Shown: positions 6,609-52,309 of the stretch, one piece after another
How positions within the stretch are numbered: position 1 is the first letter of the stretch
Layout: every line of letters begins with the position of its first letter
From: Saccharolobus solfataricus P2
Lineage (GTDB): Archaea > Thermoproteota > Thermoprotei_A > Sulfolobales > Sulfolobaceae
NCBI RefSeq assembly: GCF_000007005.1
Contig: NC_002754.1
DNA: 64,000 nucleotides
Strand: one strand, 5' to 3'
Program-made: the position numbers and the translations under genes
Notes under the pieces: generated by a model
Database searches by the model: none
What the model saw: only the letters and a program-made list of their open reading frames with translations
Told to the model about the DNA's origin: nothing

Positions 6609-7103
<495 letters not shown>

Positions 7104-7104
7104 T

Positions 7105-11431: not shown

Positions 11432-12072
11432 CTTGTTGGGCATTTTACGGAATGGAAACTTTCAAACAACACAGTTTAGGTATACTCAATTTCTTTAGGG
11501 ATAACTTCTCCTATATCATTCCAATTATATCATACAGGACTGGGATCGATAAGGAAACGGTGAGGAAGAGCGTGGAGATAGGCGTTTCCCTTCACGACAT
11601 AGGTAAAACGTCTAAATACTATGATATGAGCTATTTCGGCCACGAATTTTACAGTGGGTATCTCGTTTACAAGATCCTACGAGAGTGTTGTGATTCAGAA
11701 CTAAAACCGTTAATTGCACTGGCTGCAATGAGCCATCACCAAGGGATGGAGGGTAGAACGTTAAACGAGATGATCTTGAAGGGGAATTACACGAGGATTC
11801 CTTCATTTTACGAGTTGAGGGAAGAATGTAGAAATGATATCGTGGAAATACTAGGAGAAATTGGTGTGAAAGTAAAGGATTTCCCTCAAAAGGTTACTAG
11901 AAGTGACGTCAAGAGTTGGTTTCAAAAGTTGAACATTAAGTGGAAAAACTTATACGTTATAATCCTTGGACCGTTAATGATATCTGACACAGTTGTAGCT
12001 AACAAGAATAGGGGAGGGGATCAGTACAACAAAATAATAGAGGAATATGAGAAGTGGATAAACGTTAAATAA
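11428..12072 (+). CDS. cas3'': Cas3'' HD nuclease
   Basis: H...LHDIGK...HE...SHH...D HD-domain motifs. Confidence 0.92.
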   Translation: MTCWAFYGMETFKQHSLGILNFFRDNFSYIIPIISYRTGIDKETVRKSVEIGVSLHDIGKTSKYYDMSYFGHEFYSGYLVYKILRECCDSELKPLIALAAMSHHQGMEGRTLNEMILKGNYTRIPSFYELREECRNDIVEILGEIGVKVKDFPQKVTRSDVKSWFQKLNIKWKNLYVIILGPLMISDTVVANKNRGGDQYNKIIEEYEKWINVK

Positions 12073-12084
12073 TCGATTAGTTTT

Positions 12085-12200
12085 TTATACTTGCTTAAGT
12101 TATAAAGGGCAAGGTAAAATTGGATAATGATCATATTTGAACTCATAACTTATGACTTGATTTATGCTGACCTTAACCTTTAAAGTCTAAGGAAGTATAA
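12085..12200 (+). mobile_element. 116-bp MITE-like element with TTATACTT termini
   Basis: Inverted copy of 6218-6335, lying between the convergent cas3'' and cas2 stops. Confidence 0.7.
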
Positions 12201-17400: not shown

Positions 17401-20400
17401 ATCATTCTTTCAATTCCTTTTAGGATTAATCATTAGCTAAACCATTTCAAAGGCTAACATCTTCTATGTCTTTCAATTCCTTTTGGGATTAATCATAAAT
17501 CCACAAAGTGGCCGTTCAAAGCAAAGAGTTTATTCTTTCAATTCCTTTTGGGATTAATCTGATATTTATTTTCTCGTGAAAAGTGGAGGGCCTAGAACCT
17601 TTCAATTCCTTTTGGGATTAATCATTATATCATGGAGACCCAGGTGCTGTGACTATCAACTTTCAATTCCTTTTGGGATTAATCAATTAGCCAGCGTGCC
17701 ATCTGGGTAAACGTGTATTTTGGTTAACTTTCAATTCCTTTTGGGATTAATCATAATATATTTCGTTCCAACTACACCTAATGGATTCGGGCTTTCAATT
17801 CCTTTTGGGATTAATCTAATTGTCTGCCCTTGAGTTCCACTGAGAGAAACGCCTTTCAATTCCTTTTGGGATTAATCAAAAGACGTACAAATATACATCG
17901 CACCGAACGGACACATCTTTCAATTCCTTTTGGGATTAATCGGGTGCGTGCCCCACAGGTCGCGGGTCTACCCCTTGCCTTTCAATTCCTTTTGGGATTA
18001 ATCTTATGTCGTTATCTTCTTCGTTTTTGCTGCGTTGTTTCTTTCAATTCCTTTTGGGATTAATCGATAAAATATTAAATTCTCAAATTCCATTTAGAGC
18101 TTTCAATTCCTTTTGGGATTAATCAAAATTTGAAACAATATCGCATCTTGAATAATTATCTTTCAATTCCTTTTGGGATTAATCACCCCAGAATCCTTGT
18201 AAGTAATTTAGTAGCAATGTACTTTCAATTCCTTTTGGGATTAATCAGAACAAGGTAAATAGGAGTGTAGTCATAAGGAGAGCAATCTTTCAATTCCTTT
18301 TGGGATTAATCCTCATTTATTCGCATCATCTCCCACCTTATCTAAGCCGCTTTCAATTCCTTTTGGGATTAATCCCCAAGTAAGCGATATTTTAATGGGC
18401 TTACTTTTTACTTTCAATTCCTTTTGGGATTAATCGAAAAATTGGTAGAGGACAATATGAAGAATATATTATTCTTTCAATTCCTTTTGGGATTAATCGA
18501 AAAAAAGAAGGTGATGAGAGAAGATGAGTGAGAAAGACTTTCAATTCCTTTTGGGATTAATCGATCTATTCGCAGAGTTTGCGTCAACACATAAATATCT
18601 TTCAATTCCTTTTGGGATTAATCACTTTCATCTTCAATTGGGACGATTAAACTATTTAGCTTTCAATTCCTTTTGGGATTAATCCAAAAATCTCAACGAC
18701 AACACCAACCACAGCATTAACAAGCTTTCAATTCCTTTTGGGATTAATCCTGACCTTAGTAATGAGTAATAGATTCCCTGCGATGACTTTCAATTCCTTT
18801 TGGGATTAATCGGCATTTACAAGTGGTCACCAGAAATGGGCGTGTACTTTCAATTCCTTTTGGGATTAATCTGCCCCATGTCTTCGGTTTGCAAATCATA
18901 AGGTATCCCTTTCAATTCCTTTTGGGATTAATCCCATTTAAGATCTACTTCACACCACCTTCGCAGGAGACTTTCAATTCCTTTTGGGATTAATCATTTA
19001 TCTGTTTCATCCGTGGCTTTGCCACTCATTTCGTCTTCCTTTCAATTCCTTTTGGGATTAATCTACAAAAACTAAAAAATAAAAACTAAAAATTAAAAAA
19101 ACTTTCAATTCCTTTTGGGATTAATCTGATAGATTGGGAGAAATACTACCTGAAATTGAAATCTTTCAATTCCTTTTGGGATTAATCTATGTTGTAGAAC
19201 TTAAACCTACATACCATTCCGCAATTATCTTTCAATTCCTTTTGGGATTAATCCACTAGAATTGAATGTCGACAAACATACGACATGGTTCTCTTTCAAT
19301 TCCTTTTGGGATTAATCAATGGAGGCAATGAATGAATTAGAAAGTGAAGAGAGAGACTTTCAATTCCTTTTGGGATTAATCTCCAGAATGGAGGGCATAT
19401 AATGTTGAGCAGTATGACTTTCAATTCCTTTTGGGATTAATCAAATACAAAGCCGATGAACCGCAATCTGCCCCTACAATTCTTTCAATTCCTTTTGGGA
19501 TTAATCTGAAGAGATTGACGGTATAAAATTTGAAGATATAATTAACTTTCAATTCCTTTTGGGATTAATCATGGTATCTTGAGGCAGTGTACGGGTGATG
19601 CTAAGTTATCTTTCAATTCCTTTTGGGATTAATCAAGTGCCTCCAGCATTTAGTGCAAGTTGGTTTGATAGCTTTCAATTCCTTTTGGGATTAATCTTCT
19701 GTTAAGCGCTCTTGCAACCTTCATGCCATAGCCCCTTTCAATTCCTTTTGGGATTAATCCTTACTTGTTGGCTAGGATTTTACCAAATGCAATTGATCTT
19801 TCAATTCCTTTTGGGATTAATCGGTTCTAGCTTACGTTATCTAATTTCGACGTGTGCGGCTTTCAATTCCTTTTGGGATTAATCCATATAGTTCACCAGC
19901 ACCCAGCGGTGTGAAGGATATCTTTCAATTCCTTTTGGGATTAATCATTTGAAAATGTTTAACATAACTGGAGTAATTCCATTCTTTCAATTCCTTTTGG
20001 GATTAATCTTCATCTAGAAGATATGAACAAGCTGTTGATGTGCAATCTTTCAATTCCTTTTGGGATTAATCGACATTAGCCCTGGGGGTATCTAAACCAT
20101 CAGTTGAGTCTTTCAATTCCTTTTGGGATTAATCATATGACAACGTAGACATTTTCATTATGGATTGTGAACTTTCAATTCCTTTTGGGATTAATCATCA
20201 AAACGGCACAGAACATCTTAGGGCAATTAGCTCTTTCAATTCCTTTTGGGATTAATCTAATATGATTTTATTAAATCTAGTAGTAAAGCCATTAACTTTC
20301 AATTCCTTTTGGGATTAATCAACATCTTAATGCCTTTATACCGCCAGTTACACATTATATCAACTTTCAATTCCTTTTGGGATTAATCAATTTACGATAT

Positions 20401-20452
20401 TATACCGGTTGAGCCTGCAAAAAATGTCTTTCAATTCCTTTTGGGATTAATC
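14482..20452 (-). CRISPR. CRISPR array, 95 repeats / 94 spacers (hand count); transcribed repeat GATTAATCC(T/C)AAAAGGAATTGAAAG
   Basis: 25-bp repeat CTTTCAATTCCTTTT(A/G)GGATTAATC with a period of about 63 bp; degenerate first repeat at 14482 marks the trailer end; leader at the right. Confidence 0.99.
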
Positions 20453-20700
20453 TGTTGTGTTTTTATACTTCCTATTTTTCTTTTCTCCTTTCTTACTTAT
20501 AAATCTTCATGACTACCCTTTACTCTTCATGCGACCAATTTTAGTTGTAATTAATTTAACAATTTCTGGTCGCAAGGATTTTATGTTAAATTGAAACATT
20601 GGGTATCATTTATAAACGTTCAATTATTATAGAAAGATTCGTTTCGGTCGCATTGAGACTCGAACTTTCACACTTTTAAACAACTTCATAAAAACGAAGT
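20453..20700 (-). promoter_or_regulatory. CRISPR leader and promoter
   Basis: AT-rich non-coding region; minus-strand TTTATAAG box at ~20496-20503; TGCGACCA/TGGTCGCA inverted repeat. Confidence 0.8.
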
Positions 20701-21011: not shown

Positions 21012-21440
21012 ATGTTATCGCAAAATAGGTTACTATTTTACATTGCTGGGGACGTATCGGGATATAACGTAGTTAAATACATTTACGGAGAGAAAAGTGA
21101 CTATTCGTTCTTCACAGCCCATTTCTTTTACAAGATATTATCTCCCATTAAAGTAATTTCATTATTACCAGATATCTGGTAAAGGATATGCAAAAGGCTG
21201 GCGAAGTTTATAAACAAGCGATTAAACGTAATGTGACAGTTTACATGAAAAATATATATTTGCTTATAGTCTAAAGGGCAACAACGTTTCCAAAATTACA
21301 TAAAGACCTTTCCGTATATTAGGAAGAGAGTTTGTCCTTTAAAGTCTCAGAAAGTATAACTCATTAAATTATATGGACAATTTTCTAAATGAGAAATTGT
21401 ACCAAATACCGGAGTTGGCAATATCGTTATTCTAACCGAA
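21012..21440 (+). pseudogene. csx1: Csx1 (CARF-HEPN RNase) N-terminal relic
   Basis: [11 protein letters not shown]...FFTAHF...LLPD matches the Sulfolobus Csx1 N-terminus; frameshift near 21180; MITE insertion; EIVPNTGVG resumes at ~21393; remainder absent. Confidence 0.7.
21254..21359 (+). mobile_element. ~106-bp MITE-like element (TTATACTT-terminus family, second subtype)
   Basis: Close copy at 34621-34726; termini resemble those of 6218 and 12085. Confidence 0.65.
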
Positions 21441-26098: not shown

Positions 26099-26701
26099 TT
26101 GTTAATCCTTTGCGTGAACCACAAGGTACAAATACCTGTAAAAGTAAAGTATAATATAATGGCTTACATAACTGATGACTTTGAGTTCTGGGCTTGGGTG
26201 AGTAGTGAGCCTAAAGTGATGAGGATGTTTAATGAATTGGAAAAAGCTTTCAAAAGATTTGAAGGTTCATTAATGTCTTTAGGTTATAATTACATATATC
26301 TAGATGTTTTTCCCTTTGATCAGAGAAGGATAACTGTTGTATTTGGTGAATACGAACCGCTACCCGTTGATGAGCTTGAGGGTAAGGAGGAAGAACGTGT
26401 CATGAAGGAACGTGAAAATTACTTTTCGATTACTTTTGATAATATTACTCCATCTCCGATAGAACAACCTACTTTGCTATCATATGAAGTGTATGCAATG
26501 TGGTGGCTCCATCACGAGGTTCCTGAGGAAAGTGATTTCGTTAATTTGGAAGGAATTGTTGAGAAGGGATTATTTCATTGCGTGAATGGAGACAAGCGAG
26601 AGGGTAAGTCTCAGACGAAATACCTCTTGGACTTAGGGGAATGCTATAATAATTTAATAAAAGTAGTGAATAAAAGGGACTTTAAATTCCCCTTAATGTA
26701 A
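26099..26701 (+). CDS. Hypothetical acidic protein (candidate immunity/antitoxin); start may be the ATG at 26159
   Basis: Open 200-codon frame with typical codon usage, 51 bp upstream of a co-oriented basic ORF; no family recognised. Confidence 0.6.
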   Translation: MLILCVNHKVQIPVKVKYNIMAYITDDFEFWAWVSSEPKVMRMFNELEKAFKRFEGSLMSLGYNYIYLDVFPFDQRRITVVFGEYEPLPVDELEGKEEERVMKERENYFSITFDNITPSPIEQPTLLSYEVYAMWWLHHEVPEESDFVNLEGIVEKGLFHCVNGDKREGKSQTKYLLDLGECYNNLIKVVNKRDFKFPLM

Positions 26702-26752: not shown

Positions 26753-27172
26753 ATGATGTCTACTAGCGGATTTTATCAACGATCTAGGAGGGCAATAATT
26801 TATGAAACTGATTCTCTTTTCAGATATACGACTGAGGCTGAGTTAAAATTCGTAATCGAGAAAGGAGTAATTATGTCTTACAATCCAAAGGGTACATATT
26901 TGACAAATTTGTTTACTGATGACCCAAATGTTGCTGTGAAAATGTTAGCCCTATCTAAGCTTCCTCGATATAGAATTGGTCCCATTTCCATGAGTAAAAA
27001 GTTATTTTCTAAAGTTAAGTATGTAGGCATTGTGACGCCAAAAGGAAAAAGTAGGGGAGGAGCAAAGGAATACGTTTTTACTGATCCCATAATTATTGAT
27101 GTAGAGAACCTTTACGTTTACGACTTTAAAGATAGAAGAACATATACAATTCGTTTACCCTCTATTCATTGA
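26753..27172 (+). CDS. Hypothetical basic protein, putative ADP-ribosyltransferase/NAD-glycohydrolase-fold toxin
   Basis: Motif series LFRYT...GTYLT...LAL..LP.YRI...V.P....GGAKEY resembles ART/TNT-like polymorphic toxin domains (judged by eye). Confidence 0.5.
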   Translation: MMSTSGFYQRSRRAIIYETDSLFRYTTEAELKFVIEKGVIMSYNPKGTYLTNLFTDDPNVAVKMLALSKLPRYRIGPISMSKKLFSKVKYVGIVTPKGKSRGGAKEYVFTDPIIIDVENLYVYDFKDRRTYTIRLPSIH

Positions 27173-33034: not shown

Positions 33035-33387
33035 AAATAATAAAAGAGGAGTAGAAATAAAAAGTTATTCAGATAGCAGGCCTCATATCACTAATCGCTC
33101 CCATTCGAGTTCATCAACAGAATATGGTATAAATTCCCCATATTAAATTATTATAGTAATTTTTATAATTATTGAAAAGAAGTTAAAGGATTAGTTCTAA
33201 CCTAAGATATTGAAAATGAATGAATTAATGAAGCAATAATATATATTTTGTATTAACAATTGTCATTTTCCTTATCGCGTTTACTGGGCACTACACACTT
33301 AGCTTCTGACAAATCTAAGTTTGCAACGGTGGGAAGAAAAAGACTATATTTCTTTGAGTCTCATTATTGTATGAAAATTTTTGACGA

Positions 33388-34615
33388 GAGAGTGTCCGGA
33401 ATGTAAAAAATTGAATTTTTATTGGCAAGAATAAATTGGTTTTTAGCATTATCTTGGATTAAATTGGAGTAACACTTAAGTTATGGGAGTAGAGGGTAGT
33501 ACCATGGCAAGAACATTAAGACACATACCAAACCTGATGTACTACCCTCTTCCCCCAATAGAGGATATGCCGTGGAGGGAAAAATGGTTAACGGAGATCA
33601 AGCCCGTGCTGGACGCCATGGATTTGGAGAGGGTTCTGGGCGAGGGCGCGCTGGTTTACTTGAAGTTGTTAATCGTCATGGTGCTCTACTCTTGCTCCTA
33701 TAGGGACGCGGTGAAAATGGTTAACGTGAACGTGGTCGTGGCCTGGTTCGTGGGGAGGAAGGTGGGGAAGAGCACGCTGCACGACTTCGTGGGCAGGTTG
33801 TACGGGGTGAGGAAGAAGTTGTTGGAGATTTCCTTCAAGCTTGAGGAGAAGTGCCTACCCAGTTACCTCCCTGCGAGCGCGCATCTCGTGGACTTCATGG
33901 CGTGGCTAGTGGACTCCTTCCTACTGGACTTACCTCCTGGGAAGAGGAGCGTGGAGACCTTTCGGGAGAAGGCGGAGCTGGAGAGGAGGGAAGGTAACCT
34001 GGAGAGGGCCAGGAAGCTGCTCTCCCTGGGGAGAACCAAGAGGAGGTTCGAGGGAAGGTGGACCAAGAAGAGAGGGGTCTCGCACTACGGGCTCAAGGCC
34101 ATAGCCGTGATCTCCGTCTCCCTCTTCGTGAGGTCCATCACGGTGAAGCCGGCCAACTTCTCGGACAAGAGGTTCAAGTCACCGCTCAAGGGGATTAAGA
34201 TCGCGGACAGGGGATTCTCTCCCTCCCCGACACAGCTCATAGCGCGGGAGAAGCCCTTCACTACCCTGAGGGCCCACGTGGAGTTCTTCGGCACCTACCT
34301 GAACGCGTTCTGGAGGCCCTACGGGACCACGACCTGGAGGAACGACGTCTTCCTTCACGTCCTGGGAGTGATCTACAACATCAAGATGTTCCTCGCGATC
34401 CAACGGAGGACTCCTCCAGGACGTAGAGCCGTTCAGCTCTGAGACGCGCCTCCTCGCGATCAAGCAACGCTATGCGCGATAGGTAAATCCTCTCGTCTTG
34501 ATATTTTTCCATTATAAAGTTTTTCTCGGTGATCCAGGTCCTACCCTTCTGGCAATATTAATATTTATCATTCTGTTTATCTATTCGTTCAGATAATTAC
34601 ATTCCGGACACTCTC
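33388..34615 (+). mobile_element. 1228-bp IS (ISC1234-like, IS5 family) with intact transposase at 33483-34442
   Basis: 19-bp perfect TIR GAGAGTGTCCGGAATGTAA, 4-bp TSD ACGA; LVDS, IADRGF and HVEF motifs. Confidence 0.8.
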
Positions 34616-34620
34616 ACGAA

Positions 34621-34726
34621 TTATACTTGCTTATAGTCTGAAGGGCAACAACATTTCTAAAATTACACAAGACCTTTCTGTATGATAGGAATAGAGTCTT
34701 GCCCTTTAAAGTCTCAGAAAGTATAA
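34621..34726 (+). mobile_element. 106-bp MITE-like element (TTATACTT termini)
   Basis: TIRs TTATACTTGCTTATAGTCTGAAGGGC / TTATACTTTCTGAGACTTTAAAGGGC; copy at 21254. Confidence 0.7.
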
Positions 34727-34796
34727 TAGAAGCTTTATGATTTATCTAAAACTTTTAACCACTGGCATAAGATAATACAGAATACCAAAGTGCACA

Positions 34797-34952
34797 CTTT
34801 TAATTCCTTTAGGAATTTATCATCATAGTTCAGCGGGACTGGCCTATCTTCATTAAATCCTTTCCAATTCCTTATATGGAGTTATTCATTTTTAAATTCA
34901 CATGCCGAATACTATAAAAAGTAGCTACTTTCAATCCATTTTAGGATTCATC
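34797..34952 (-). CRISPR. Degenerate mini-CRISPR: 3 repeat-like units, 2 spacers (38 and 40 nt)
   Basis: Units at 34797-34821, 34860-34887 and 34928-34952; the last is 22/25 identical to the large-array repeat; normal CRISPR spacing. Confidence 0.7.
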
Positions 34953-34996
34953 GGTGTGTCTTTATACTTCTGCCTTTCTTTTTTCCCGTTATTGTT
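34953..34996 (-). promoter_or_regulatory. Leader remnant of the mini-CRISPR
   Basis: GTGTCTTTATACTTCTGCCTTTCTTTT resembles GTGTTTTTATACTTCCTATTTTTCTTTT next to the first repeat of the large array. Confidence 0.55.
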
Positions 34997-35159
34997 GGGC
35001 GATTCAGGTCTCCTTTGCTAATTATAATTTGTAAACAATACGTTGTAAAAATGTTAATATTAATAATCATGCATCTTTGCCAGTTAATCATCTTTATTTA
35101 GTTAATTTCGTAGTAATCTTTAAAATAAAGTGAATTCGCAACGGATAACTGAATCGCCC
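34997..35159 (+). mobile_element. 163-bp MITE
   Basis: Perfect 11-bp TIR GGGCGATTCAG; related copies at 46816, 48365-49639 and ~62108-62264. Confidence 0.75.
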
Positions 35160-35787
35160 TCTGGATATAAAGGATGTATCATGTGACACCCATTACCAAT
35201 ATCTTAAGGATAATCGAATTTGCATTACGATATATTAAAAAAGTAGTTTCATAGCGCTTACTCTCATTTATTACCCTTAGTCTTCAATTAGACTGTTTCG
35301 TATGGGCAATTATACAAAAATTCTCTCATCTTAAGATTTTCTATGAATTTTCATAATATTGAAAGGATTTAGAGTGTGATGAAAAGGGATAGTTTGCTTG
35401 TTCTAGCTCGTGTTTCTCATATTCATTTAACTAACAAGTCTTTATGAGGATTCAGTTAAGCTTATAAGCTACGAACGGGCTAATAATAATGTGCCCCAAA
35501 ATGAATTGATATAAACGAGCGACTTTGTATCTATATTCAATATTATCTACCGCCCAATTTGTCCTACAATGAGTATTTTTTAGTCTTCTTTCACGGGATA
35601 AATTACGTCAGATAATGGATTAGAAAAATATTTAAATATCCAGCCAGACCATTCTATACTGGTGGATAAAAATGACTATAAGTACAAGATCGAGTTTGGT
35701 ATTAGATATAATTTTTCTGAAGCTAAATAAAGGTAAAGAGGAGAAGAAGAAGGTTAATCTACAATAAGGAACTGAGGGGTGAACCCT

Positions 35788-36312
35788 ATGACGTTCCTAT
35801 TTAAGGGTATAGAATGCGAAGTCTATAAAATTACGTCAGTCAAATTAAATTACAGAGCTAAATTTACCTATACTGACTATTATGTTGAATATCATGATAA
35901 CTTCCTCTCAGTTAGCGAAATAGCTAACAAGATGCTTAAAATTAAGGAAATTGGACATGACAACGGTAGGACTTTAGAAGATAGTGTGAGGGAACTAATG
36001 AATGTTGTTCCAGCACAAAAAGTTTGTAAGCACTATATCTGTGGCAAGGCTGACTTCGTGAGAGAAGGAATTCCGGGTGAGATTAAGACTTTCAAGGAAG
36101 AGGTTAATCCAATTTATGAAGAGAAGGGAATACTTCAAGCAGTATTTTACGCAATGCTTTATGGAACAAAAATGTCGGAGTACGTTTCGGCGATTTACGA
36201 GGAGGATCTGAATAACGAGGATTACGCTATAATCAAAAGGATTGACTTTCATAGGATAATTCTGAGGAAACTAAGCTTGAAATATTTGCCTAAAGTTGAG
36301 GTGGTAGCATGA
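35788..36312 (+). CDS. Cas4-like PD-(D/E)xK nuclease lacking the four-Cys cluster
   Basis: LSVSEI, GKADFV, GEIKT and LQAVFYAMLY RecB-type motifs; GGGGTGA ribosome-binding site; first gene of the III-D operon. Confidence 0.65.
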   Translation: MTFLFKGIECEVYKITSVKLNYRAKFTYTDYYVEYHDNFLSVSEIANKMLKIKEIGHDNGRTLEDSVRELMNVVPAQKVCKHYICGKADFVREGIPGEIKTFKEEVNPIYEEKGILQAVFYAMLYGTKMSEYVSAIYEEDLNNEDYAIIKRIDFHRIILRKLSLKYLPKVEVVA

Positions 36313-36569
36313 ACATAGATATGGAGTACGTTTACATTTTGGTAACGAGACGCCCTATAACTGACAGTTTTGGAGTAGCGGTTATCTTTGAGGGACTAGG
36401 TTTGTGCTTCAACGTATTCGTCTATAAGCCTAGCCGAAATGCCATAATAATGAAAGTAGGCGAATTCAAAAAGCTTCTGAGATTCCTTAAAGAGGTAACG
36501 AATGCAGAATACAAAATGCGTGATTTCGGATATAACTCAGCACTCATATACTTTCTCAGGGAGATTTGA
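36309..36569 (+). CDS. Hypothetical 86-aa protein
   Basis: ATGA overlap with the upstream gene and 1-bp gap to cas6 imply translational coupling. Confidence 0.6.
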
Positions 36570-36570
36570 T

Positions 36571-37293
36571 ATGATAGTTGCGGAAATTTTCGTTAAACCT
36601 GAGAGCGACGCTATCATACCGTTTAGTAGTAAAGTGGGGAAGAGTTTGCTTTTGGATCCTAAGAACGTTTCAATATCTCCTCTAAAATACAAGGGCAAAT
36701 ACTTGATAAAGTACGGATCAGTTTTAACTTTTCTGGAGGTTATTGGGGGTAATGTTTACTCTTTTGAGGTAGGTGGGGATGAGAGGAATGTGTACTCTGC
36801 TCTAATTAATTTGGGTGATAAGAGTTTATTATTCAATACTTATTGGAAAGTTGTCGACGTTGAGGTTCATGAAGTTGAGGTTAGTTCGATACCGAAGAAC
36901 TTTGGGGTTGATATTTTAACACCGGCTTTGATAGTCTCTCCCTATGTGAAGGAAAAGAGGAAGGTGTTCACTAATAAGTCTGAGTACGTTTTCTTCAATA
37001 ACATTATTGACGCTACCGGGTTCAATAGAGGTGATGTAAAGTTAAGTGAGGTGATTTCTCGTTTTGCTCAATTACTTTGGGAGGAACCGTCAATTATAGG
37101 ATATGCTAATGTGAGGTATGGTGATAAGTTGGTTATTGGGATGATCGGTAAATTGAGGTACTCGGTTAAGGGGGAGGATGAAGTTTTAATTAAGGTATTG
37201 GAGGACGCAATTGTGAGGGGTATTGGTTCGTCCAGAAGGAATGGGTTTGGTGTTGTAAGAATTAAGGGGGTGGAGGCAAGCTGGTTACGATAA
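36571..37293 (+). CDS. cas6: Cas6
   Basis: PFSSKV N-terminus and [11 protein letters not shown] glycine loop; ATG at 36571. Confidence 0.9.
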
Positions 37294-37907
37294 TCGGGTC
37301 TGATTTGGTTTACCTTAATTATGAAATAGAGAATTATACGAGGAACGTTAAAAGGGTTATTGTCTGCGGAGACGTTAAGGGATTTAGGTTGAGGGTTAAT
37401 AGGGTTGAGGTAATTGATAATTGTTTGTCTCTAGATGTTGAGGGAATAGCTGAGAGTATTGCTAGGAGGATTGGAAATAGTAAGGATAGTTATGTTGTTT
37501 TGCTTAATGGGAATTCCAATAAGTTCGCTGCAGCTATGTTTTACTTGTTTTCCATTATTTGCAAAAGGGTGAAGTTTGTAATCTACGATAGGGAAAGGGT
37601 TGAACTGGATGGAGATGTTTTTAGAAAGGTTGAGATTGACGATAAAATGATTACTGTACTGGGGGAGATAATGAATGGACGTTATAAGATAGAGGAGATT
37701 GAGAAGGATACTGGGATTAGTAAGGCTACAATTTCGAGGGTTAGAAGGAAGTTGGAGGAGATGGGGTTGGTTAAAAAGGTTGATGGTGGGAAATATTGTA
37801 TTAGTGAAAGGGGAAAGATAGTTGTTTACGATGGAGGATTTTTCAGAAATGTGAAAAAGGGAGGAAGGTATTATGAGAGTAAAACATTATATACAGAGAG
37901 AGTTTAA
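37281..37907 (+). CDS. CARF-like plus wHTH regulator (Csa3-like)
   Basis: C-terminal wHTH ([28 protein letters not shown]); N-terminal Rossmann-like VTIIGSD and LLNGNSNK; start at CTG 37281 or TTG 37305. Confidence 0.65.
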
Positions 37908-38292
37908 TTATAGTGTGTCTTCTCAAGATTTACTTGACATTGCTACAAGGATAGCAATATCTGCAATTAAACCTAAACCCAAAAGTAATAAACCAGAACC
38001 ATATGTGGATTCTAGTACGATAAATAGTTTGTTGAGTTTTCTGCAAAGTAGAAGGAATGTAAATGAGTTGTTACTTTACATTATGCGTCAAGCTGGGAGA
38101 GATGAGATAGATGAGGAAACCGGGAAGTTGTTGTTGGCCAGTTTAAAGGATAGGGAGTTAAAGGATGCTGTGAATCTTTTGGGATATGTGAAGTGGGTTT
38201 ACGATACTTTAACGGGGTTAAAAGTTAATTACAATAATGTGAAGGGTGTTAAGACCTTCAAGGAGCTTGTTAACATTTTGAGTAAGGTGTGA
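37873..38292 (+). CDS. csm2: Type III small subunit (Csm2/Cas11-like)
   Basis: 139-aa helical protein with YIMRQAGR motif, heading the RAMP genes. Confidence 0.7.
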
Positions 38293-39041
38293 AAATGTCT
38301 TGTATGGATCTTGATGTTATAACGACTGTTGTGAAAATTGAGGGTAAGTTGCGTAATGAAACTCTCTTAAGAGTAGGTAAGGGTAAGACTCAAGATTTCG
38401 CTGAGGCTACTGATAATCCAATAATTAAATATAGGGATAGACCTTTAATACCCGGTTCTAGTTTGAAGGGGGCATTCAGGAGTTTAGTAGAGTCCTACAC
38501 CAAGTCATTAAACGACAGTAAATATTACGTGTGTGATTTGGACGATAATAGTTGCGTTAGCTGTGAGGAGAAAAAGAAGGATAATGGGATTGTAGAGGGG
38601 AGATATTGTATTCCTTGTATATTATTTGGCTTTAAGGATTTGGCTTCCAGGGTTTATATTTTAGACGCTATTGCTGAGAAGTACTCAATTTCCCAGAGAA
38701 CGATGGTTGCGATTAATAGGGTTTTCGGCGGACAAATGCCTGGCCATTTGTATACTTTGGATTACGTAGACCCTGGTAGTGAATTTAGTTTTATGATGAT
38801 GATTTATAATCTTAACTTGATCGAGGGGGAGAAGGATTGGAAGGCGAAGTCTGTTGAAGCCTTGAAGTTCCTTTTAGCGACACTGGTTAGAGAGGGGATT
38901 TTCGTAGGAGCTAGGAAGAGTGTTGGTTATGGTTTAATTAAGTTAGTTGACGCTAAGGTGAGTTTATATAAGGCACCAGATCACCTAGTTTCTCCAGTTA
39001 TTGTGAAGAAATTGGAAGAGGTGATTGGTACTAATGGTTAA
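38289..39041 (+). CDS. csm3: Type III-D Cas7-group RAMP (Csm3-like)
   Basis: [19 protein letters not shown]-x2-C-x-LFG and [10 protein letters not shown] motifs. Confidence 0.85.
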
Positions 39042-39870
39042 CTATACATTTATTGATAAGAGAGTGATAAAGAGGACTACTATGATTGAGGGAGATGTGG
39101 AAACGGTATCTCCATTAAAGATTGGTGGGGGAAAGGATAATTTCGATCCATCTTCCCTGGCTAAAGATTCCATCCTAAAGGATGTTGAAGGTAGACCGAT
39201 AATTCCAGGATCATCATGGAAGGGGATATTTAGATCTACTGGTGAAAGAATTTTAAGGTTAAGAAATATAGAAGTTTGTAGCGGTATAGGAAAGGATTAC
39301 TGTTTGAATAATAATCGAAAAGAAAGGGACTTCAATAGTGCGTTGAAGGAAAACGTTGATCAAGCATTAGAGATATTTTGGGATTATACTTGTTTGAACT
39401 GTAAAGTTTTCGGAACGATGAGTGTTATAGGTGCTGTGAGATTTCTAGATTCACTTCCCATTAGTTACTCATTGAACACTAGATCGATGATAGCGATAAG
39501 TAGGACGGAGGGAGCTGTAGCTAGGAGGGCCTTAGTAACTGTTGAATACGTTGATGTAGGGTCTAAATTTAGTTTTAAGATGATGGGGTACAATTTGCCT
39601 AATTACGCTATTGGTTACTTAATTACGATAATGAAGAATATTCATGATGGCTTTACACAAGTCGGAGGGCATAAGAGTAGGGGGTTCGGTTTTGTGAAGT
39701 TCGGTAAGGTTAAGTTTACCGATCTTGGAGAAAAGAGGATTGGTGATGAGGATATTCAAGTTAAGGATGTAGGTGATTTAGTGGAAGGAAATGGAGATGA
39801 GTTTTTCGGGAGAATGAAACCTTTTATGGAGGCTTTCAATAATGCAAAGATCCCCTATCCGAAGAAGTAA
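39034..39870 (+). CDS. csm3: Type III-D Cas7-group RAMP (Csm3-like)
   Basis: [19 protein letters not shown] and GGHKSRGFG motifs. Confidence 0.87.
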
Positions 39871-40669
39871 CTATACTCCTAGAAATGAAAAGGGATTAGA
39901 AGGGGTTATAGAGTTACAGCTAAATGTAGTTTCCGATTACTTACACGTAGGTTCTGGGAAGTATGATGTGGAGGTAATGCGTAGCGTTAGTGACGTTAAA
40001 CGATTGGTTGAGGATTATTTAAGCGGAGGTAATAAAAGAATCCCTAATAATGTTGATCAGTATTTCTCAATGGTAGCTTTTCTAATGGTTAGAAATAAGG
40101 ATAATGTTGTTATTCCCGGGTCAACTATTAAGGGAATGGTTAGGAGTAGGTTGGAGTTATCTGTACCGGGTTCATGTTATATAGTTACTGGGCATTCTAC
40201 TTCATCTTCTGCAGTTTATAAGAGGATTTTCAATCCTGATCCAAATAGGGGTAGTGATAGGTTTGACGTTAATAAATTTCCACAAGTTTGTCCAGTTTGC
40301 GATTTATTAGGCAATATGGGATTAGCTAGTAGGGTATCGTTAAGTGATTTCGTAATGACGTCTGGTAAGGTAGATTACGTAAACGTTAAAGGAAGGGATT
40401 ATGAAGTTGTTACTAAGGGTTCGATTTTCGCTGGAAAGGTTTTGTATAAGTCTCTGAAGCCTGTTGAAATTGGGATGTTATTATATGGTTTTGGTTTCGT
40501 TAAGGATTGTAATGGGTCTAAGGTTATGCTATTGGGTAGGTTTAAGTTTTCTGATAAGAGGTTTGGAAGGGTTAAATTTAGTTTGAAGACTCCTATAGCA
40601 GATTGTAATAAACTTGTTTCTGATTTTGTTAAACAATTTAATCCTAGATATATTAATGAGGAGTGGTAG
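39842..40669 (+). CDS. Type III-D Cas7-group RAMP
   Basis: [14 protein letters not shown] and CPVCDLLG motifs; degenerate glycine loop. Confidence 0.8.
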
Positions 40670-40670
40670 A

Positions 40671-40835
40671 ATGAAGAAGTGTATTAGATATGATTTATAT
40701 ATAGAGGAGTGTAAACCGGGCAAGGATTACCTCTATGAGTTGGATTGTAAAGAAAGTGAGGAGGGCGATATAAGGAAAATTGAATGTAATGGGATAAAGT
40801 ATATTGAGATGGTGGTTAGGTATGATAAGAGGTAA
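40671..40835 (+). CDS. 54-aa Cys-containing micro-protein between the RAMP genes and cas10
   Basis: Fills the gap exactly: 1 bp after the RAMP stop and overlapping the cas10 start. Confidence 0.45.
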   Translation: MKKCIRYDLYIEECKPGKDYLYELDCKESEEGDIRKIECNGIKYIEMVVRYDKR

Positions 40836-43310
40836 GTTGTTGTTACCAGAAAAAAAGGTTGTTTTCATTAACGAGAGTGAAGTGCAGAGTTTGAGGAAAG
40901 ACGTTGTAGATGCATTAAAGGTATTTTCATCCTTAGCGTGTGAACTAGCTGATAATAACGAGACTAAGGCTACCAATATTTTCGCTGATCTAATTTCAAT
41001 GATTTATAAGCTCCCTATGTTGATTTCTTACGTACCTAGTGATAAGTTATCAACCCCCCATGAGTACTTCTTTGCCTATATAGTGTTTAGGCATCTAGTA
41101 GAGGACTCTATGCCAAGTAACGATATTGCCAAGTTATTGGAGATATTAGAGGAGAAGAAAAGAGATGAGATTAAAGAGGTTTTAGATTACGCGAGGACTT
41201 TGAGGAAAATTTACGAGAAATTGCTTTACGTTCCAGCTGATACTAGGCCAGGGTATAATTTTACGTCATTGGCCTCTCATCTTCAATTGTCATCAATTTT
41301 AGTTTGGCTATTGCAAAAGGGATCAGTGGATTTAAACTACTTGAGGATTTCGGCTTTACTTCATGATATAGGTAAGTTATTTAACCCAACTAACCACGTG
41401 AGTGAATCTATTAAGATTTTGGATGAGGTTATTGAGGGATCGGAATGTCTAAAGACCAATTTGAGTAGGGTGAAGAGTTTAGTTGAACAGCATCACGCTC
41501 CTTTGGAGACTATTTTGAACGATGCCGATAGATTGGCTGCATCTACTGATAGGTTTAGTGAGATAGTGAAAGGTGCTTTAAATAACACGAAGATAGGTGA
41601 GTGTTATAGTTTGTGTTATGGTAGGGATGTGAGAACAAAGGAGTGTATGGAGTGTTTAGAGGAATACGGCGAAGAGACGTATAGTGAGGAGAGCAAGAGG
41701 TTGTATGATGTAATAAGTAATTCTGTTGTTAGTCAGAAGGTTGAGGGTAATGCGATAGGTTATTTGGTTTACATTGATTTTCCTGGAATACAGAGATTCA
41801 TAACGAGTTTTCCAAAGTTAAGAGAGATGAGTTTCGCTAGTTTTCTAGTGGACTTTGTAACTTCAATTTACTCATTTATAGTCTTGGATCAAGCCTATTA
41901 CGAGAGAACTGGTAAAAAGTCAAGAATCCCCGCAGAGGCTTTGTTAAGTGGTTATGGTGGACATTCATATATTATAGTTAGGAGTGATTTCGGTTCTAAG
42001 GATGAGGTTAAGGCGTGGTTGGAAAGCGTTTCTTCTTCAGCTCTTAGTAAGTTAGGTATTAGATTAGACGTTAAGGTCGCTGACTTTGCCTATGAGAACT
42101 ACGTTAGGAATTATAAGGAGGTCTATGAGGATATGATGTCTAAGAGTTATGAGAGATATTTAATTCGTGATGAGGGGAAGGTTTACTCTTATGGTTTGCA
42201 TAGAGTTTGTGATAATTGCGGTATAAGGCCTGCTGTTAATAGAAGTGATGATGGGGAGTATTTATGTGAGACTTGTAATTTAGTTAGGGATCTATCTAAG
42301 AATAGAGGTTTTATTGCTAAGTATAAGTCAAAATACACTCTATATGAGGAACAACGTATTGAGATTTCACCTAAGGAGGATATAAAGTTTAAGCTTGATA
42401 AGAATCAAGACCCTACCACTACGCCATGGAGATTATTGCGGGTTATCGTACTACTTCTGACAGTAGGTATATTGCCTTGATTAAGGCTGATGGAAATAAC
42501 GCTGGAAAGATCTTTGGAAATACCGTTACGTTTTCGGAGTATGTAGATAAAAGTTTTAGGCTAGATTTCGGAGTGAAGAAGATGTTCTACGATACGTTAC
42601 TGGACATTATGAGGGCTTCTAGTGATGAGTCAATTAAGAAGGACTTAGTCTCAAGGATCTTACTTGGTGTGCTTTATTTGGGTGGAGATGATATAATGTT
42701 ATTGTCGCCCTCAGCAATTGCAGTGCCATTTGCTGTTAAAATGTTTAAGAGGAGTTTAGAGTATACGGGGTTTACGTTTAAGGTGGGTATTATATCAGTT
42801 AAGCCAGATCACCCAGTGCAGTTCGCTTATGGGGCTGTAAATGCGCTTATGGAAGAGAGTAAGATTCATACGGGTGAGAAGTCTTCAATAGGCGTTTTGG
42901 TGTTTTCTTCAACTTTAGCCAGTGAGGGTGTTGTTAAGAGCGATTTGAAAAATTATAGGAAAGAGAAGGAGAGTTTTTTGGTAGTTTCCAATGACGTTGA
43001 TGATGTAGAGAGGCTTTTGAATCTGATGGAGTTGGATGACTTTGGAAAGCTTATGGAATTATATTGGAATCCTGAGGAGGGAAGAAAGGTGATTAGAGAT
43101 AAGATAAGGTCTTTAGAACGTTTCGTAAATTATGCTGACACTCACGACTTTTACAATACTTTGGCTTACTTAATAAGGTCTAAGGCTAAGAGCGAGGAGA
43201 ATAGTTTGATTAAGAGGATTATTGATTTGACTATAAAGGGTAGGGACGATTTCGTGTTTCCGCTTTACGATTACTACTTTATTTTAAAGTCAATTAGGGT
43301 GGGAATATGA
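40822..43310 (+). pseudogene. cas10: Cas10 (type III-D), split by an apparent 1-bp frameshift at ~42402-42425
   Basis: HD motif LLHDIGK and zinc finger CDNC...CETC in the 5' ORF; KADGN and GGDD palm motifs in the 3' ORF (42426-43310). Confidence 0.9.
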
Positions 43311-43927
43311 TACCGATTAAGGTGAGTATGAGGAATTTGAGTTCACTTACAATAGCTGGAGGTAGTACTATAAGCTCTATCGATATTCCTCTTAACCCAC
43401 TTGGAGTTCCGCCATCAACGATAAAGGGTACAATGAGGACGGCAGTGCATAATTTACTACCTAATGGGTATACGTCATGTGGGGAAGTAGAGCCTGAAAG
43501 TATTAGGGAAGCTCATAAAAATGGAGTTTGTGACGTTTGTAAATTATTCGGTTATCCAGATTCCCTTACGGGGTGTTTTACTATAGACGTTTCCAAAACT
43601 GATTATCGTACATCTTATATAACTAGGGTTTCAATTGACGATAAAACGCAAAGGGCCAAAGAGGGTTCCCTCTTTACCCAACAAATCATATTGCCAAATA
43701 GCGATATTTCCTTTACTGTTTATTACAATTGTAATGATGAGAGATTGTTTAAACTTCTACTTTACTCTATCCTGGATTTAAGGTATTGGAGGTTGGGAAG
43801 AAATACTATGATTGACGTAAAGGTTAATAATGTTGAGGAGATTTGTAAGAGCGTTAAGTGTGATGAGGAAATTAATGGAATATTAAACCAACTTTCCAGA
43901 TATTTGTGGGAGGCTGAGAATAAATGA
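43307..43927 (+). CDS. Type III-D Cas7-group RAMP
   Basis: PPSTIKG, CDVCKLFG and TRVSIDD motifs. Confidence 0.8.
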   Translation: MIPIKVSMRNLSSLTIAGGSTISSIDIPLNPLGVPPSTIKGTMRTAVHNLLPNGYTSCGEVEPESIREAHKNGVCDVCKLFGYPDSLTGCFTIDVSKTDYRTSYITRVSIDDKTQRAKEGSLFTQQIILPNSDISFTVYYNCNDERLFKLLLYSILDLRYWRLGRNTMIDVKVNNVEEICKSVKCDEEINGILNQLSRYLWEAENK

Positions 43928-44838
43928 TCTTAATAAAGTTAAAGGTTAAAGGCTACATAACTACTCAAATGAGGAGAATTAGGAATTACTACTTCTCAAT
44001 AACAAATTACATTCCTTCAACAACTCTTAGAGGAGCCATACTAGCTGAGTACTATAATCAAACTGGGAAAATTGATGAAAACTTTTACGTATCTCCAGCC
44101 TATCCAATTAAGACTGCCCCAGCCCATTACTTCAGCCCAGCTAAGGAGAGGAAGGGTGATGAGTTCATTGAGGTTAAAAGGATACTTGAGAAGAAGGAAA
44201 AGGAGTTTGAAGCCAATAAGCCAATTGAAGAGATAATGAAATTGGAGATTGATGGTAAACATCCCAAGCCTAAAATAGGATCTTTAATAACTTATGAGGG
44301 GGAGACTGATAAGGAGAATAAATATAGGGAATTCTCGAGTAAATCAATTATTCAAATGCACGTAGCTATTGATAAGACGTCAATATCCTCATATAAGGGA
44401 ATGCTGTTCGCCTATGAATACAAGGAATTCGATGAAATGTGGGCTATTGCCTCAGACTCTGAAGTTATTGACACTGTTAAGAGAATAAAGATTGGTAGGG
44501 GGAAGAATAGGGGCAATAAGGTTGTTGATGTTGAAAAGGTTAGGGAAGTATCATTGGATCAGTCCAAAGGGTTATTATATTGTCTATCTCCTTGTATAGG
44601 ATCACTATTTGGTAAAACGTTCTTTAAGGCGAAATATATCATAGGGGATAAGTCAATTTACTCTGGTTGGTTTACGGTAGATAGTTTCAGTGGTCAAAAG
44701 CCAGTCTTTGAGACGTTAAGAGAGGGTTCCCTAGTTTACGTTGAGAGTTTTAGTAACGAGAAAAGTTTAATGCCCGCAGGGCTTAATTTCATGCTAAGAA
44801 TATCAGACTTAAGCTCAATACTTAATAAGGTGAGTTAA
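43924..44838 (+). CDS. csx10: Type III-D Cas5-group RAMP (Csx10-like)
   Basis: YIPSTTLRGA, HVAID and IGRGKNRG motifs; position after cas10. Confidence 0.7.
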   Translation: MILIKLKVKGYITTQMRRIRNYYFSITNYIPSTTLRGAILAEYYNQTGKIDENFYVSPAYPIKTAPAHYFSPAKERKGDEFIEVKRILEKKEKEFEANKPIEEIMKLEIDGKHPKPKIGSLITYEGETDKENKYREFSSKSIIQMHVAIDKTSISSYKGMLFAYEYKEFDEMWAIASDSEVIDTVKRIKIGRGKNRGNKVVDVEKVREVSLDQSKGLLYCLSPCIGSLFGKTFFKAKYIIGDKSIYSGWFTVDSFSGQKPVFETLREGSLVYVESFSNEKSLMPAGLNFMLRISDLSSILNKVS

Positions 44839-44839
44839 A

Positions 44840-45598
44840 ATGGTCATTCAAGTTTTCAGGTTAAATTTCAGATTAAGAACTGGTTTCAGAGTAGGTGGAG
44901 GTCAAGAGGTAGGCGATAACGTAATACGTCAATTGAGAATAGGAGTAGAAGGCGTAATGATCCCTGCCAGTAGTTGGAAGGGAATGTTTAGAAGGGTGAG
45001 TGAGATCGTTTTGAACAGTGAAGATCATTTTGAAGAGCATAGCAAAAAAGAGGTAGATACTAGGACAATAAACGCTTTACTGAAGAGCGATGAGAAATTC
45101 AGAAGGATAGCTATAAGCAAGGTTGGTAAGGAGGTTATTACACAAAATGGTATAAATGTTGATAAGCTAGATAGTGAGAGTTTAAGCGATCTGAGGAGGA
45201 TTTACAATGAATATAATTGTCCAATTGAGAGATTATACGGAAGTAATTATTTCGCTGGAGGTATTACTATTTCAGATAGCGTTATTCCTAATGCAAGTAT
45301 AATGGAAAGAACGCATGTAACTATCGAAAGGAAGAGTAAAAAGGCTTCTGAAAAACACTTGTTCAGTGAGGAGATAATTGATGCTGAAAAGATTGAGGTT
45401 AAGGTGATAGTTAGAAATGAGTTTGAATTATGGAAAAATAGTTTAAAGTTACTGAGGGAGATCGGCTACTTCATTGGAGGAAGTAAGTCTAGAGGTATCG
45501 GCTACATTGTACTGGACGAAAAGGAGAGTGAATATGCAGTTATAAATAACTTTAGTGAAACTCCTAAATTTTCTGAACTTAAGAGATATCTGAGTTAA
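44840..45598 (+). CDS. Type III-D Cas7-group RAMP
   Basis: FRVGGG, IPASSWKG and IGGSKSRGIG motifs. Confidence 0.82.
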   Translation: MVIQVFRLNFRLRTGFRVGGGQEVGDNVIRQLRIGVEGVMIPASSWKGMFRRVSEIVLNSEDHFEEHSKKEVDTRTINALLKSDEKFRRIAISKVGKEVITQNGINVDKLDSESLSDLRRIYNEYNCPIERLYGSNYFAGGITISDSVIPNASIMERTHVTIERKSKKASEKHLFSEEIIDAEKIEVKVIVRNEFELWKNSLKLLREIGYFIGGSKSRGIGYIVLDEKESEYAVINNFSETPKFSELKRYLS

Positions 45599-46106: not shown

Positions 46107-46691
46107 ATGATGAAAAGCTTAGTAATTCACGGGAAAAATTCCTCTCCAGAGAAAGTGGAATGGTTAGCGAAACCGCTTAGGAAGTTTGGAGAAGTTATTG
46201 TACCTGAATTCGAGATCGAAGCAAAGGAAGGTGTAGAAAAAGCACTAACTTACGATTTCGACTGCATAGCGGGTCACTCTAGAGGAGGTCTAATCGCACT
46301 AATTGCAGCAGCGTTAAAGGGAAAATGGGCTATTGCTGTCTCAGCCCCATCAGATAGGAGAAAACAAAAGGAGTACTTATCGAAGTTCCCACCCGGTACA
46401 GTGCAGTATAACATTTACCAAGATTTAATGAAGATGCCGGAGTACGAGCTTGAATATTCGTCACTTTCCTACGCTGATAGGTTAAAGAAAGTACTATTAA
46501 TACATGGAGAAGATGACGAAATGGTATTAAAGGAACATTCAATTACCTTATGTGATACAATAAAAAGGATGGGAGGGGATTGCGAGTTGCATATAATTCC
46601 GAAAATGAAGCACACACCTTTAGGGCAACAGTATCAAACAATTTGGAGTATAATTGAGGATTGGATAAAGAGGAATAGTTCTAGTTTTTAA
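46107..46691 (+). CDS. Alpha/beta hydrolase (esterase/peptidase)
   Basis: GHSRGG nucleophile elbow, HGEDD and MKHT motifs. Confidence 0.85.
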
Positions 46692-48364: not shown

Positions 48365-49639
48365 GGGAGATTCAGTTATCCATTGCGAATTCACTTTATT
48401 TTAAAGATTGCTACGAAATTAACTAAATGAAGATCGCGGGAGTGTTCTCATGCAGTCATCTTATTCGACAATTGTTAGTAAAATTATATCAAGTTTTCTA
48501 TAATATACCGTACTCCCTTCAAGTAAGCCTCATTTAAGTTATCTCCTTTGAAAATACGTGAGGATACATTACATTTAACAAGGCCAAACTGTACTCCACC
48601 ATCCTCCCACTCCTAGTAACAGCTTTAGTATCCCTAGCCAGCCTCGCCAAATGAGACCTACACCAAGAATTATGACTCTCCACAAGATAAGTATACTTCT
48701 TACTCGCTACACGATTATCGAGAACTTGATAAACACAGTAGTAGTCAGTATAGTTTACCTCACTCCTAGGTAACCAACCCAAGAGATAACGAAAAGTCCC
48801 ATAACTCCTATCCCCAAACTCATAGAAAGGCACACCATCAGCAAGAGCAGTCCAAATCCACAAATCCTCCCTCATCACCCCATGCCTAACACGGAAATAA
48901 GTCCAGAACTCGTCAAACACCGTAGACTTAGCTGTGAAATTCTTGAGCTCACCCTTCAAGATCGTTAGATACGTGAAGGCCCTTATCCCAATCCTCCTCA
49001 CTAGGCTGTAAACAGTAGTCAATGGTTTACCTTCAACTCTTGATATTGCCCTCATGCTCATCCTGTTCAAGTACTCCTTTAAGATTCTCTCCCTCTGTTC
49101 CCTATCCATTCTGTGCTTTAACGCGTCGTAAAACGTCCTTCCACACGCTTTACACTTGTATTTTGCTCTCCCTCTAGATGAACCGTTCTTCACTACTCTG
49201 TTAGAGTTACATGATGGGCATGTTGGTCTGCTTTCTCCTCTCCTCCTTATCCCTACTTTCCTCAAGTAGTAGTATAGGGTTGATGGTGGGATTCCCGTTT
49301 TCGTGATTTGAACTCCCAAGGAGTAGGCTGCTAATGCTAATGCAATATCCTTTAGCTCGTACTTTCTCGGCTTAAGATTTAAATTTCTTAGAATCATAAG
49401 TATTAATTGTGCGAGGGTTACAAGATCCATATTGGTAACCCTCACAAAAAATCTCGTAACCCTCGCACATAAGCTTTTTCAGAGGCTGTTTTCATGTTCT
49501 AATTCATTGGCTGCATCTCGATCGAAACGACTAATTGTGGAAATTTCTAGCCTGATTTAATTTTACTATATGATATCGAATAAGATGACTGCATGAGAAC
49601 ACTCCCCATTACAGTTTACAAAGGAGGCTTGAGTCGCCC
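48365..49639 (-). mobile_element. 163-bp-family MITE split by an IS1-family insertion
   Basis: 48365-48437 and 49607-49639 match the two ends of 34997-35159 in reverse orientation. Confidence 0.65.
48438..49606 (-). mobile_element. IS1-family element (ISC1173-like) with transposase at 48534-49445
   Basis: 29-bp perfect TIR GGGAGTGTTCTCATGCAGTCATCTTATTC; CPSC...CKAC zinc ribbon, DEFWTY, YTD and VESHN motifs; no TSD seen. Confidence 0.85.

Positions 49640-50519: not shown

Positions 50520-52309
<1,790 letters not shown>

Follow-up and report, generated by a model that had tools for sequence, protein, structure and literature searches.

The intergenic DNA upstream of the type III-D (CSM) operon of Saccharolobus solfataricus P2 carries three degenerate CRISPR repeats and the stub of a leader (positions 34797-34996 of the stretch analyzed). 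They probably represent what decay has left of an AB-family array, its leader-proximal end, at a site where the array formerly accompanied the Cas6-3/III-D module, and we infer both that they descend from a full array and that they have lost their function. The crRNA-like RNA of this locus is already known as ncRNA60; it is separate from the remnant and had been overlooked in the first-pass annotation, which proposed either a fossil array or an RNA regulating cas genes or a toxin.

The window, meaning the whole 64-kb stretch, corresponds to P2 positions 1,240,001-1,304,000 (AE006641.1). A P2 coordinate is therefore the window position plus 1,240,000 (window 42426 is P2 1,282,426), and window and P2 were identical over 33300-40000. 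Besides the III-D operon, there are two type I-A modules in the window. The features that frame the remnant are as follows.

6615-12072: type I-A module, plus cas1 and cas6
14482-20452: 95-repeat CRISPR array of the AB family (array B), plus-strand repeat CTTTCAATTCCTTTT[A/G]GGATTAATC
35779-45598, plus strand: accessory cassette and type III-D (CSM) operon, from NCBIfam/Pfam matches and the P1 and P2 gene tables
35779-36312, plus strand: 177-amino-acid (aa) ORF, probably sso1421, first gene of the III-D accessory cassette
Between the 177-aa ORF and Cas6-3, plus strand: 86-aa ORF of the accessory cassette
36502-37293, plus strand: Cas6-3, in the accessory cassette
37305-37907, plus strand: HTH protein, followed by Csx7-type RAMPs, Cas10 and further RAMPs
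57153-59148: 32-repeat CRISPR array of the CD family (array C)

In both real arrays the plus strand is the reverse complement of the transcribed repeat, so transcription runs leftwards and the leaders lie on the right. Array B also contains a perfect repeat-spacer duplication at 14924-15077 (period 64, 2.4 copies, 100% identity), which yields two identical adjacent spacers. A perfect 42-bp tandem duplication is present elsewhere, at 50701-50786, inside a minus-strand ORF of the cas region.

To locate repeat-like sequences, we ran a fitting alignment of the AB repeat against both strands of the whole window and took 100 Markov-simulated backgrounds as the chance level. The three highest scores outside the real arrays (35, 30 and 28) belong to three units, here termed U3, U1 and U2, which recur with the periods of 63 and 68 bp that had been reported for them and leave inserts of 38 and 40 nucleotides (nt), here termed S1 and S2.

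34733-34746, minus strand: putative fragment of a fourth unit, CTTTATGATTTATC, weakly suggested by eye and abutting a MITE-like element; similar, apart from one deletion and two mismatches, to the final 15 nt (3' end) of the repeat as read on the plus strand
34797-34821, minus strand: pseudo-repeat U1 (distal), identical to CTTTCAATTCCTTTTGGGATTAATC at 21 of 25 positions without gaps; handle ATTAAAAG
34822-34859, minus strand: pseudo-spacer S1, 38 nt
34860-34887, minus strand: pseudo-repeat U2, 28 nt, with one mismatch and three 1-nt insertions; handle TTGGAAAG
34888-34927, minus strand: pseudo-spacer S2, 40 nt
34928-34952, minus strand: pseudo-repeat U3 (leader-proximal), 22 of 25 positions with three mismatches to the AB repeat; GATGAATCCTAAAATGGATTGAAAG in transcript sense
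34953-34996, minus strand: leader stub, 44 nt, with the equivalent of the array-B start present and the TATA box absent

Two of the units are also recognized by the Rfam model CRISPR-DR25, U3 at 34.3 bits (E value of 7e-5) and U1 at 29.8 bits (E value of 1e-3), and U3 retains the canonical 8-nt handle ATTGAAAG intact. Chance resemblance in AT-rich intergenic DNA has next to no probability as an explanation. The simulated backgrounds had a mean best score of 20.1, with scores of at least 28 in 2 of 100 and a score of 30 in a single one, and that one background is what speaks for chance; against it, the top three sites of the window lie in phase on the strand of the arrays, all inside 156 bp and beside a leader-like sequence, and they are recognized independently by Rfam and by chromatin immunoprecipitation of Cbp1 (see below). 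Jointly, this evidence refutes a chance origin, and the alignment with the repeat on which the first-pass annotation had made the locus depend is statistically sound. The gradient of decay with distance from the leader that it described holds only loosely: U3 is indeed the best preserved, yet U2 is more degraded than the more distant U1.

The pseudo-spacers fit the spacer range of 34 to 48 nt quoted for P2 (PMC3807668). Both are unique in the window, where the best other matches of S2 are at most 11 nt long. Since the units have the orientation of arrays B and C, transcription of the remnant would by analogy run leftwards along the minus strand, with the III-D operon behind it; the remnant had indeed been said to face away from that operon. 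The putative minus-strand transcript folds no better than shuffled sequences (z = -0.73). With direct repeats of the host family, regular spacing and a leader on the correct side, the remnant has the anatomy of a CRISPR array.

A lone repeat-like sequence, ACTTCAATTCCTTTTATCCTTTAATC, occurs at 6390-6414 (plus strand), 200 bp upstream of the type I-A operon, whose first gene is csa5. Its score of 25, the fourth in the window, was reached by 9 of the 100 simulated backgrounds, and the published Cbp1 list has no peak at P2 1,246,4xx, where this site lies (PMC10883916).

We next compared the stub with the leader of array B. Positions 34955-34986 are 82% identical to it over 33 nt at the same offset from the repeat (shuffle P = 0.002), which bears out the reported resemblance to the leader of the large array. 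The start and TATA positions of array B were taken from primers 1477, 1479 and 1333 in the supplement of PMC10883916; according to this primer information, the transcribed region of array B starts AGGAAGTATAAAAA(A)CACAACA followed by GATTAATCC, and the promoter primer ends GATTTATAAGT (Blombach et al. 2024, PMC10883916). The start of array B is thereby placed at 20473 and its TATA box at 20497-20503, which are 21 nt and 45 to 51 nt, respectively, upstream of repeat 1. In the stub, the start-equivalent region reads CAGAAGTATAAAGACACACC followed by GATG. An intact leader promoter has its TATA box about 24 to 30 nt upstream of the start; since that of array B lies 45 to 51 nt from the repeat and only 44 nt of leader are left, no canonical TATA box adjoins the stub, and the canonical promoter of the remnant is broken. 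As had been noted, the leader is cut by a 163-bp MITE beginning at 34997; this is the place where array B has its TATA box. The mobile elements around the remnant are listed below.

33385-34618, plus strand: insertion sequence of 1,234 bp, with an IS5/DUF772-type transposase and 31-nt terminal inverted repeats
33483-34442: transposase ORF of this insertion sequence
34620-34727, no strand assigned: MITE-like element of 108 bp with 29-nt inverted ends, on the distal side of the remnant
34997-35159, no strand assigned: MITE of 163 bp interrupting the leader, with 27-nt terminal inverted repeats that are 85% complementary

The remnant is a 269-bp island (34728-34996) between mobile elements, with 69 nt separating U1 from the 108-bp element. 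The length of the insertion sequence would fit ISC1234. The element at 34997-35159 is a MITE: it is short and non-coding, has inverted ends, occurs in several copies (related copies at 62118-62262), and shares its ends with an insertion sequence, with 94% identity over 70 nt to the terminus of an IS1-family element (48365-48434). Its flanks, GTTATTGTT and TCTGGATAT, differ, and no target-site duplication was found in them, so the DNA on its right may not be the original continuation of the leader. The present arrangement may reflect a simple MITE insertion or a MITE-mediated rearrangement that joined unrelated DNA. Past the MITE there is an ATATAAA at 35166-35172 and a stretch that looks collinear with the array-B leader by eye (TATAAA, CATG..ACCC.TTAC). 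We do not claim that the leader continues there, as the resemblance falls short of significance (P = 0.44) and a target-site duplication is not seen. The MITE itself carries a TATA-like TTATAA at 35022-35027, about 25 nt from its edge, which could be a candidate replacement for the lost TATA box.

The 108-bp MITE-like element has an 89% identical copy at 21255-21359 and fragments at 6218-6246 and 12085-12200. The second copy lies about 800 bp from repeat 1 of array B, and the fragments are near the lone repeat and cas3''.

The same intergenic region contains a further sequence derived from the AB repeat. Sokolowski et al. (2014, PMC4041471) singled out ncRNA60 as an abundant RNA other than crRNA that made up about 1.5% of the reads from purified CSM. 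The gene neighbors sso1421 and sso1422; of the two enzymes Cas6-3 and Cas6-1, only the former cuts the precursor, UAAUGUGCCCCAAAAUGAAUUGAUAU (PMC4041471). The published precursor UAAUGUGCCCCAAAAUGAAUUGAUAU matches the window exactly at 35487-35512 on the plus strand, 20 nt past a TTATAA box, which places the gene as follows.

35462-35582, plus strand: ncRNA60 gene, with the TATA box TTATAA at 35462-35467 and the Cas6-3 site at 35487-35512

Mature ncRNA60 extends from 35505 to a T-run near 35582, and we reproduced its predicted 8-bp hairpin; no target of ncRNA60 was found in the window. The remnant (34797-34996) does not coincide with the precursor (35487-35512), and the two lie on opposite strands.

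To ask which of the two sequences is conserved, we compared strains and relatives that share the cassette (an SSO1421-like gene, a small ORF, cas6 and an HTH gene, followed by III-D). The remnant is identical in P1, P2 and CP050869.1, strains too close to each other to show drift; CP050869.1 differs at 5 positions in 6.7 kb, none of them in the remnant. The nearest relative with the same cassette is Saccharolobus sp. E5-1-F, whose intergenic DNA is 72% identical over 391 nt (window 35419-35799). The conserved region spans the TATA box, the core of the Cas6-3 site ATGAATTGATAT and the 3' part of ncRNA60, TCCTACAATGAGTATTTTTT. Within 6 kb upstream of the E5-1-F cassette, no repeat-like sequence scored 18 or more. 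In S. islandicus M.16, a clear ncRNA60 homolog lies about 290 nt from the first cassette gene; no mini-array was found, and an IS110 fragment fills the space upstream. Sulfolobus sp. A20 has the same layout more weakly (BLAST E value of 0.43), with the core CCTATAATGAATTGAT. No array lies directly upstream in Sulfurisphaera ohwakuensis or S. acidocaldarius SUSAZ, and scans of genome contigs with Csx7 and with an alignment of the SSO1421-like protein gave no confirmed relatives. The comparisons show that position and sequence are conserved for ncRNA60 and not for the remnant.

The ncRNA60 homologs, found in E5-1-F and S. islandicus M.16 with the weaker match in Sulfolobus sp. A20, lie about 290 nt upstream of an SSO1421-like gene (L013 5651-5800, L005 7168-7315 and L007 9165-9320, the last on the minus strand, in the coordinates of the relatives' loci). 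They have in common a TATA box and the invariant core CC..AATGAATTGA and vary in the middle part; the 3' end, TCCTACAATGA..TTTTTT, is kept in the homologs and has diverged in A20. By its appearance, ncRNA60 belongs to the III-D accessory cassette as one of its conserved parts. That E5-1-F and M.16, and probably A20 as well, have kept the promoter, the Cas6-3 site and the 3' end of ncRNA60 may prove the more useful result of this analysis.

The comparison also brought out some features of the neighboring genes. In the 177-aa protein (35779-36312) and its relatives, residues C83, C88, D92, E101-x-K103, Q120 and Y124 are invariant and by eye resemble the PD-(D/E)xK motif of Cas4-like nucleases; the protein has no Pfam or NCBIfam match, and one source calls a relative "restriction endonuclease." The III-D cas10 gene of the P2 reference (40804-43310, plus strand) is split into two overlapping ORFs of 558 and 294 aa. 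In P1, one extra base after window 42418 gives an intact ORF of 835 aa, and the split in P2 is due either to a genuine frameshift or to a mistake in the reference sequence of 2001. Finally, S. tengchongensis carries a lone CD-type repeat, CTTTCAATTCCATAGAAGATTATC, 1.2 kb upstream of the III-D accessory cassette (L009 2533-2595). This repeat, which is unrelated to the remnant, has a TATA-like ATATATAC next to it and, at a distance of 40 nt, a partial second repeat.

Targets were then sought for the pseudo-spacers, as the first-pass annotation had suggested PAM-adjacent partial matches, especially in cas promoters and in a toxin-like gene at 26.7 kb. Within the 64-kb window, S1 and S2 (crRNA sense) had neither a PAM-flanked seed nor a match of type III length. 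The best seed runs there, of 14, 13 and 12 nt, all lack a CCN or TCN flank and lie outside promoters, so no partial match of the proposed kind exists in the window, cas promoters included. The ORFs at the toxin-like locus (26099-26701 and 26753-27172) contain no pseudo-spacer match and have no Pfam match. The longest run, in which the 5' end of S1 matches 46422-46435 exactly over 14 nt, was rejected as a target: it lies in the middle of a hydrolase coding sequence, its flank is CAA, and the strand would pair only with antisense RNA. Among shuffled spacers, runs of at least 12 nt occurred in 12% of trials and runs of 14 nt in about 1%. Comparison of S1 and S2 with a phage collection gave noise only, their exact cores (18 nt for S2) had no match in viral contigs, and they do not resemble the spacers that come first in arrays A and B. 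No copy of the remnant was found when metagenomes were scanned with U3 and with the junction of U3 and leader.

These results bear on the idea that the mini-array is still expressed, which we regard as unlikely. In that case the MITE-borne or a cryptic promoter would drive transcription, Cas6-3 would cut at U3 and U2, and crRNA-like RNAs would enter CSM or the type I-A Cascade as guides that regulate cas genes or another target, as CreR and CreA RNAs do. The Cas6-type 5' ends on the minus strand would then lie at 34935 (P2 1,274,935) and 34867, beginning AUUGAAAG or UUGGAAAG. Several observations are consistent with this picture. U3 keeps the canonical AUUGAAAG handle, Cas6-3 cuts the more divergent repeat-like site of ncRNA60 (PMC4041471), the unit stands beside cas6-3 and the III-D operon, and the TATA-like hexamer in the MITE would be at a suitable distance. 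Given the perfect handle of U3 and the relaxed specificity of Cas6-3, any read-through transcript could be processed. Some non-canonical Cbp1 sites have associated transcription starts as well (PMC10883916). Weighing against an expressed mini-array are the lack of a target in the window, where the best seed is the 14-nt run in the hydrolase coding sequence flanked by CAA and not CCN, and the absence of the unit from the E5-1-F, M.16 and A20 loci that have the same cassette. The work on CSM-bound RNA reports nothing from the remnant, though it noticed ncRNA60 at 1.5% of reads (PMC4041471); this silence is an argument from absence. A large survey of CRISPR-cas loci points the same way: mini-arrays stand beside 10 to 16% of type III loci (16% of III-D loci), had no positional conservation or targets, and were judged to be non-functional and probably degraded repeats (PMC10120712). 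A fossil array, our preferred reading, fits all of the tests, and of the two possibilities that the first-pass annotation left side by side, the Cas-regulating or antitoxin RNA lacks a window target, conservation and a canonical TATA box.

The remnant is bound by protein in vivo. Supplementary dataset 1 of PMC10883916 lists a Cbp1 ChIP-seq peak, peak116, with its summit at P2 1,274,948, which is window 34,948 and falls inside U3. The CRISPR-repeat-binding protein Cbp1 thus binds the remnant in vivo, and still recognizes it because U3 keeps the repeat motif. In the published list, peak116 is 73-fold enriched and the second strongest of the 92 non-array Cbp1 peaks in P2 (PMC10883916). The sections of that paper on non-canonical Cbp1 sites describe them as repeat-like and often transposon associated (PMC10883916), and the passages searched contain no statement that peak116 is the relic of an array. 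The rank of the peak, second of 92, could hint that the remnant is in use.

One such use would be as DNA, with the Cbp1 site kept for its effect on neighboring transcription, for example by damping MITE or IS promoters or by insulating the promoters of ncRNA60 and III-D. We consider this improbable, though worth stating, as the summit in U3 is a strong one (73-fold, second of 92 in the published list) and Cbp1 is described as repressing cryptic promoters that overlap repeats, with many non-canonical sites at transposons (PMC10883916). However, binding of Cbp1 is expected from the sequence alone, the relatives have no repeat at the corresponding place, and Cren7 co-binding is generally missing at non-canonical sites (PMC10883916). 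In a doubtful scenario that draws on both uses, the remnant would be live: transcription from the MITE edge and cuts by Cas6-3 would add one or two pseudo-crRNAs to ncRNA60 as non-immune CSM guides, or U3 with its bound Cbp1 would act as a cis element controlling both ncRNA60 and III-D expression. Were this so, the locus would hold a divergent pair of repeat-derived regulators, not demonstrated for type III.

Returning to the fossil array, we propose the following history. An AB-family CRISPR array would once have stood next to the Cas6-3/type III-D module. Point mutations and, in U2, indels would have eroded its repeats, leaving three, possibly four, with two unique spacer-sized stretches. 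The 163-bp MITE would have come to lie where the TATA box of the leader belongs, and the 108-bp MITE-like element and the insertion sequence would have truncated the distal side. The remnant would then no longer be an immune array, nor would it be the regulatory crRNA-like RNA of the locus, that role falling to ncRNA60, and Cbp1 binding at U3 would be a passive consequence of the retained sequence.

The first-pass annotation did not place the locus among the named arrays of the species, and it is indeed not one of the six arrays A to F (PMC10883916, PMC4041471). No paper describing the remnant was found in the literature searched, and the Cbp1 peak sits unremarked in a published table (PMC10883916, within the passages searched). 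With it, the best-studied Sulfolobales genome has an unnamed seventh CRISPR relic, and one of the strongest "non-canonical" Cbp1 ChIP peaks is explained as an array remnant and not a transposon site. It also illustrates how MITE and IS activity may erode arrays beside a type III-D module. A degenerate mini-array near cas genes need not be a regulator, and here the processed RNA is ncRNA60. Should the remnant nonetheless prove to be processed and loaded, it would provide rare repeat-derived regulatory guides in a type III system.

Among known systems, the closest in place is ncRNA60, which shares the intergenic region, the AB-repeat-derived sequence and the link to Cas6-3 and CSM (PMC4041471). 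It has one repeat-like site and its own TATA box, points to the operon, has been shown experimentally to be processed and loaded, and is conserved, whereas the remnant, made up of three units and not conserved, lies 490 to 535 bp leftward, 535 bp when counted from U3, and on the opposite strand. CreR and CreA (CreTA) RNAs of type I and V systems likewise combine degenerate repeats, a spacer-sized insert and cas neighbors (bioRxiv 10.1101/2023.03.10.532045 and PMC10120712), and a type I-A effector is present in the same genome as the remnant. Unlike them, the remnant lacks an intact promoter of its own, is not conserved and has no partial, PAM-flanked match to a cas or toxin promoter in the 64-kb window; its neighbor is a type III system, where regulation of this kind has not been shown.

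Array F of P2, which has no leader, and array E, with six spacers, resemble the remnant in having lost the capacity to grow, but their repeats are perfect and they produce crRNAs, whereas the repeats of the remnant are mutated and include indels. With the non-canonical Cbp1 sites, the remnant shares a listed peak and a repeat-like motif; the strong sites described in PMC10883916 are mostly in ISC1229 transposons, while peak116 marks a true array remnant. The degraded type III mini-arrays of the survey (PMC10120712) have in common with it at least two degenerate repeats near III-D, no target and no positional conservation. What sets the remnant apart from them is that it has kept a leader stub, is bracketed by MITEs and an insertion sequence, and is still bound by Cbp1 in vivo.
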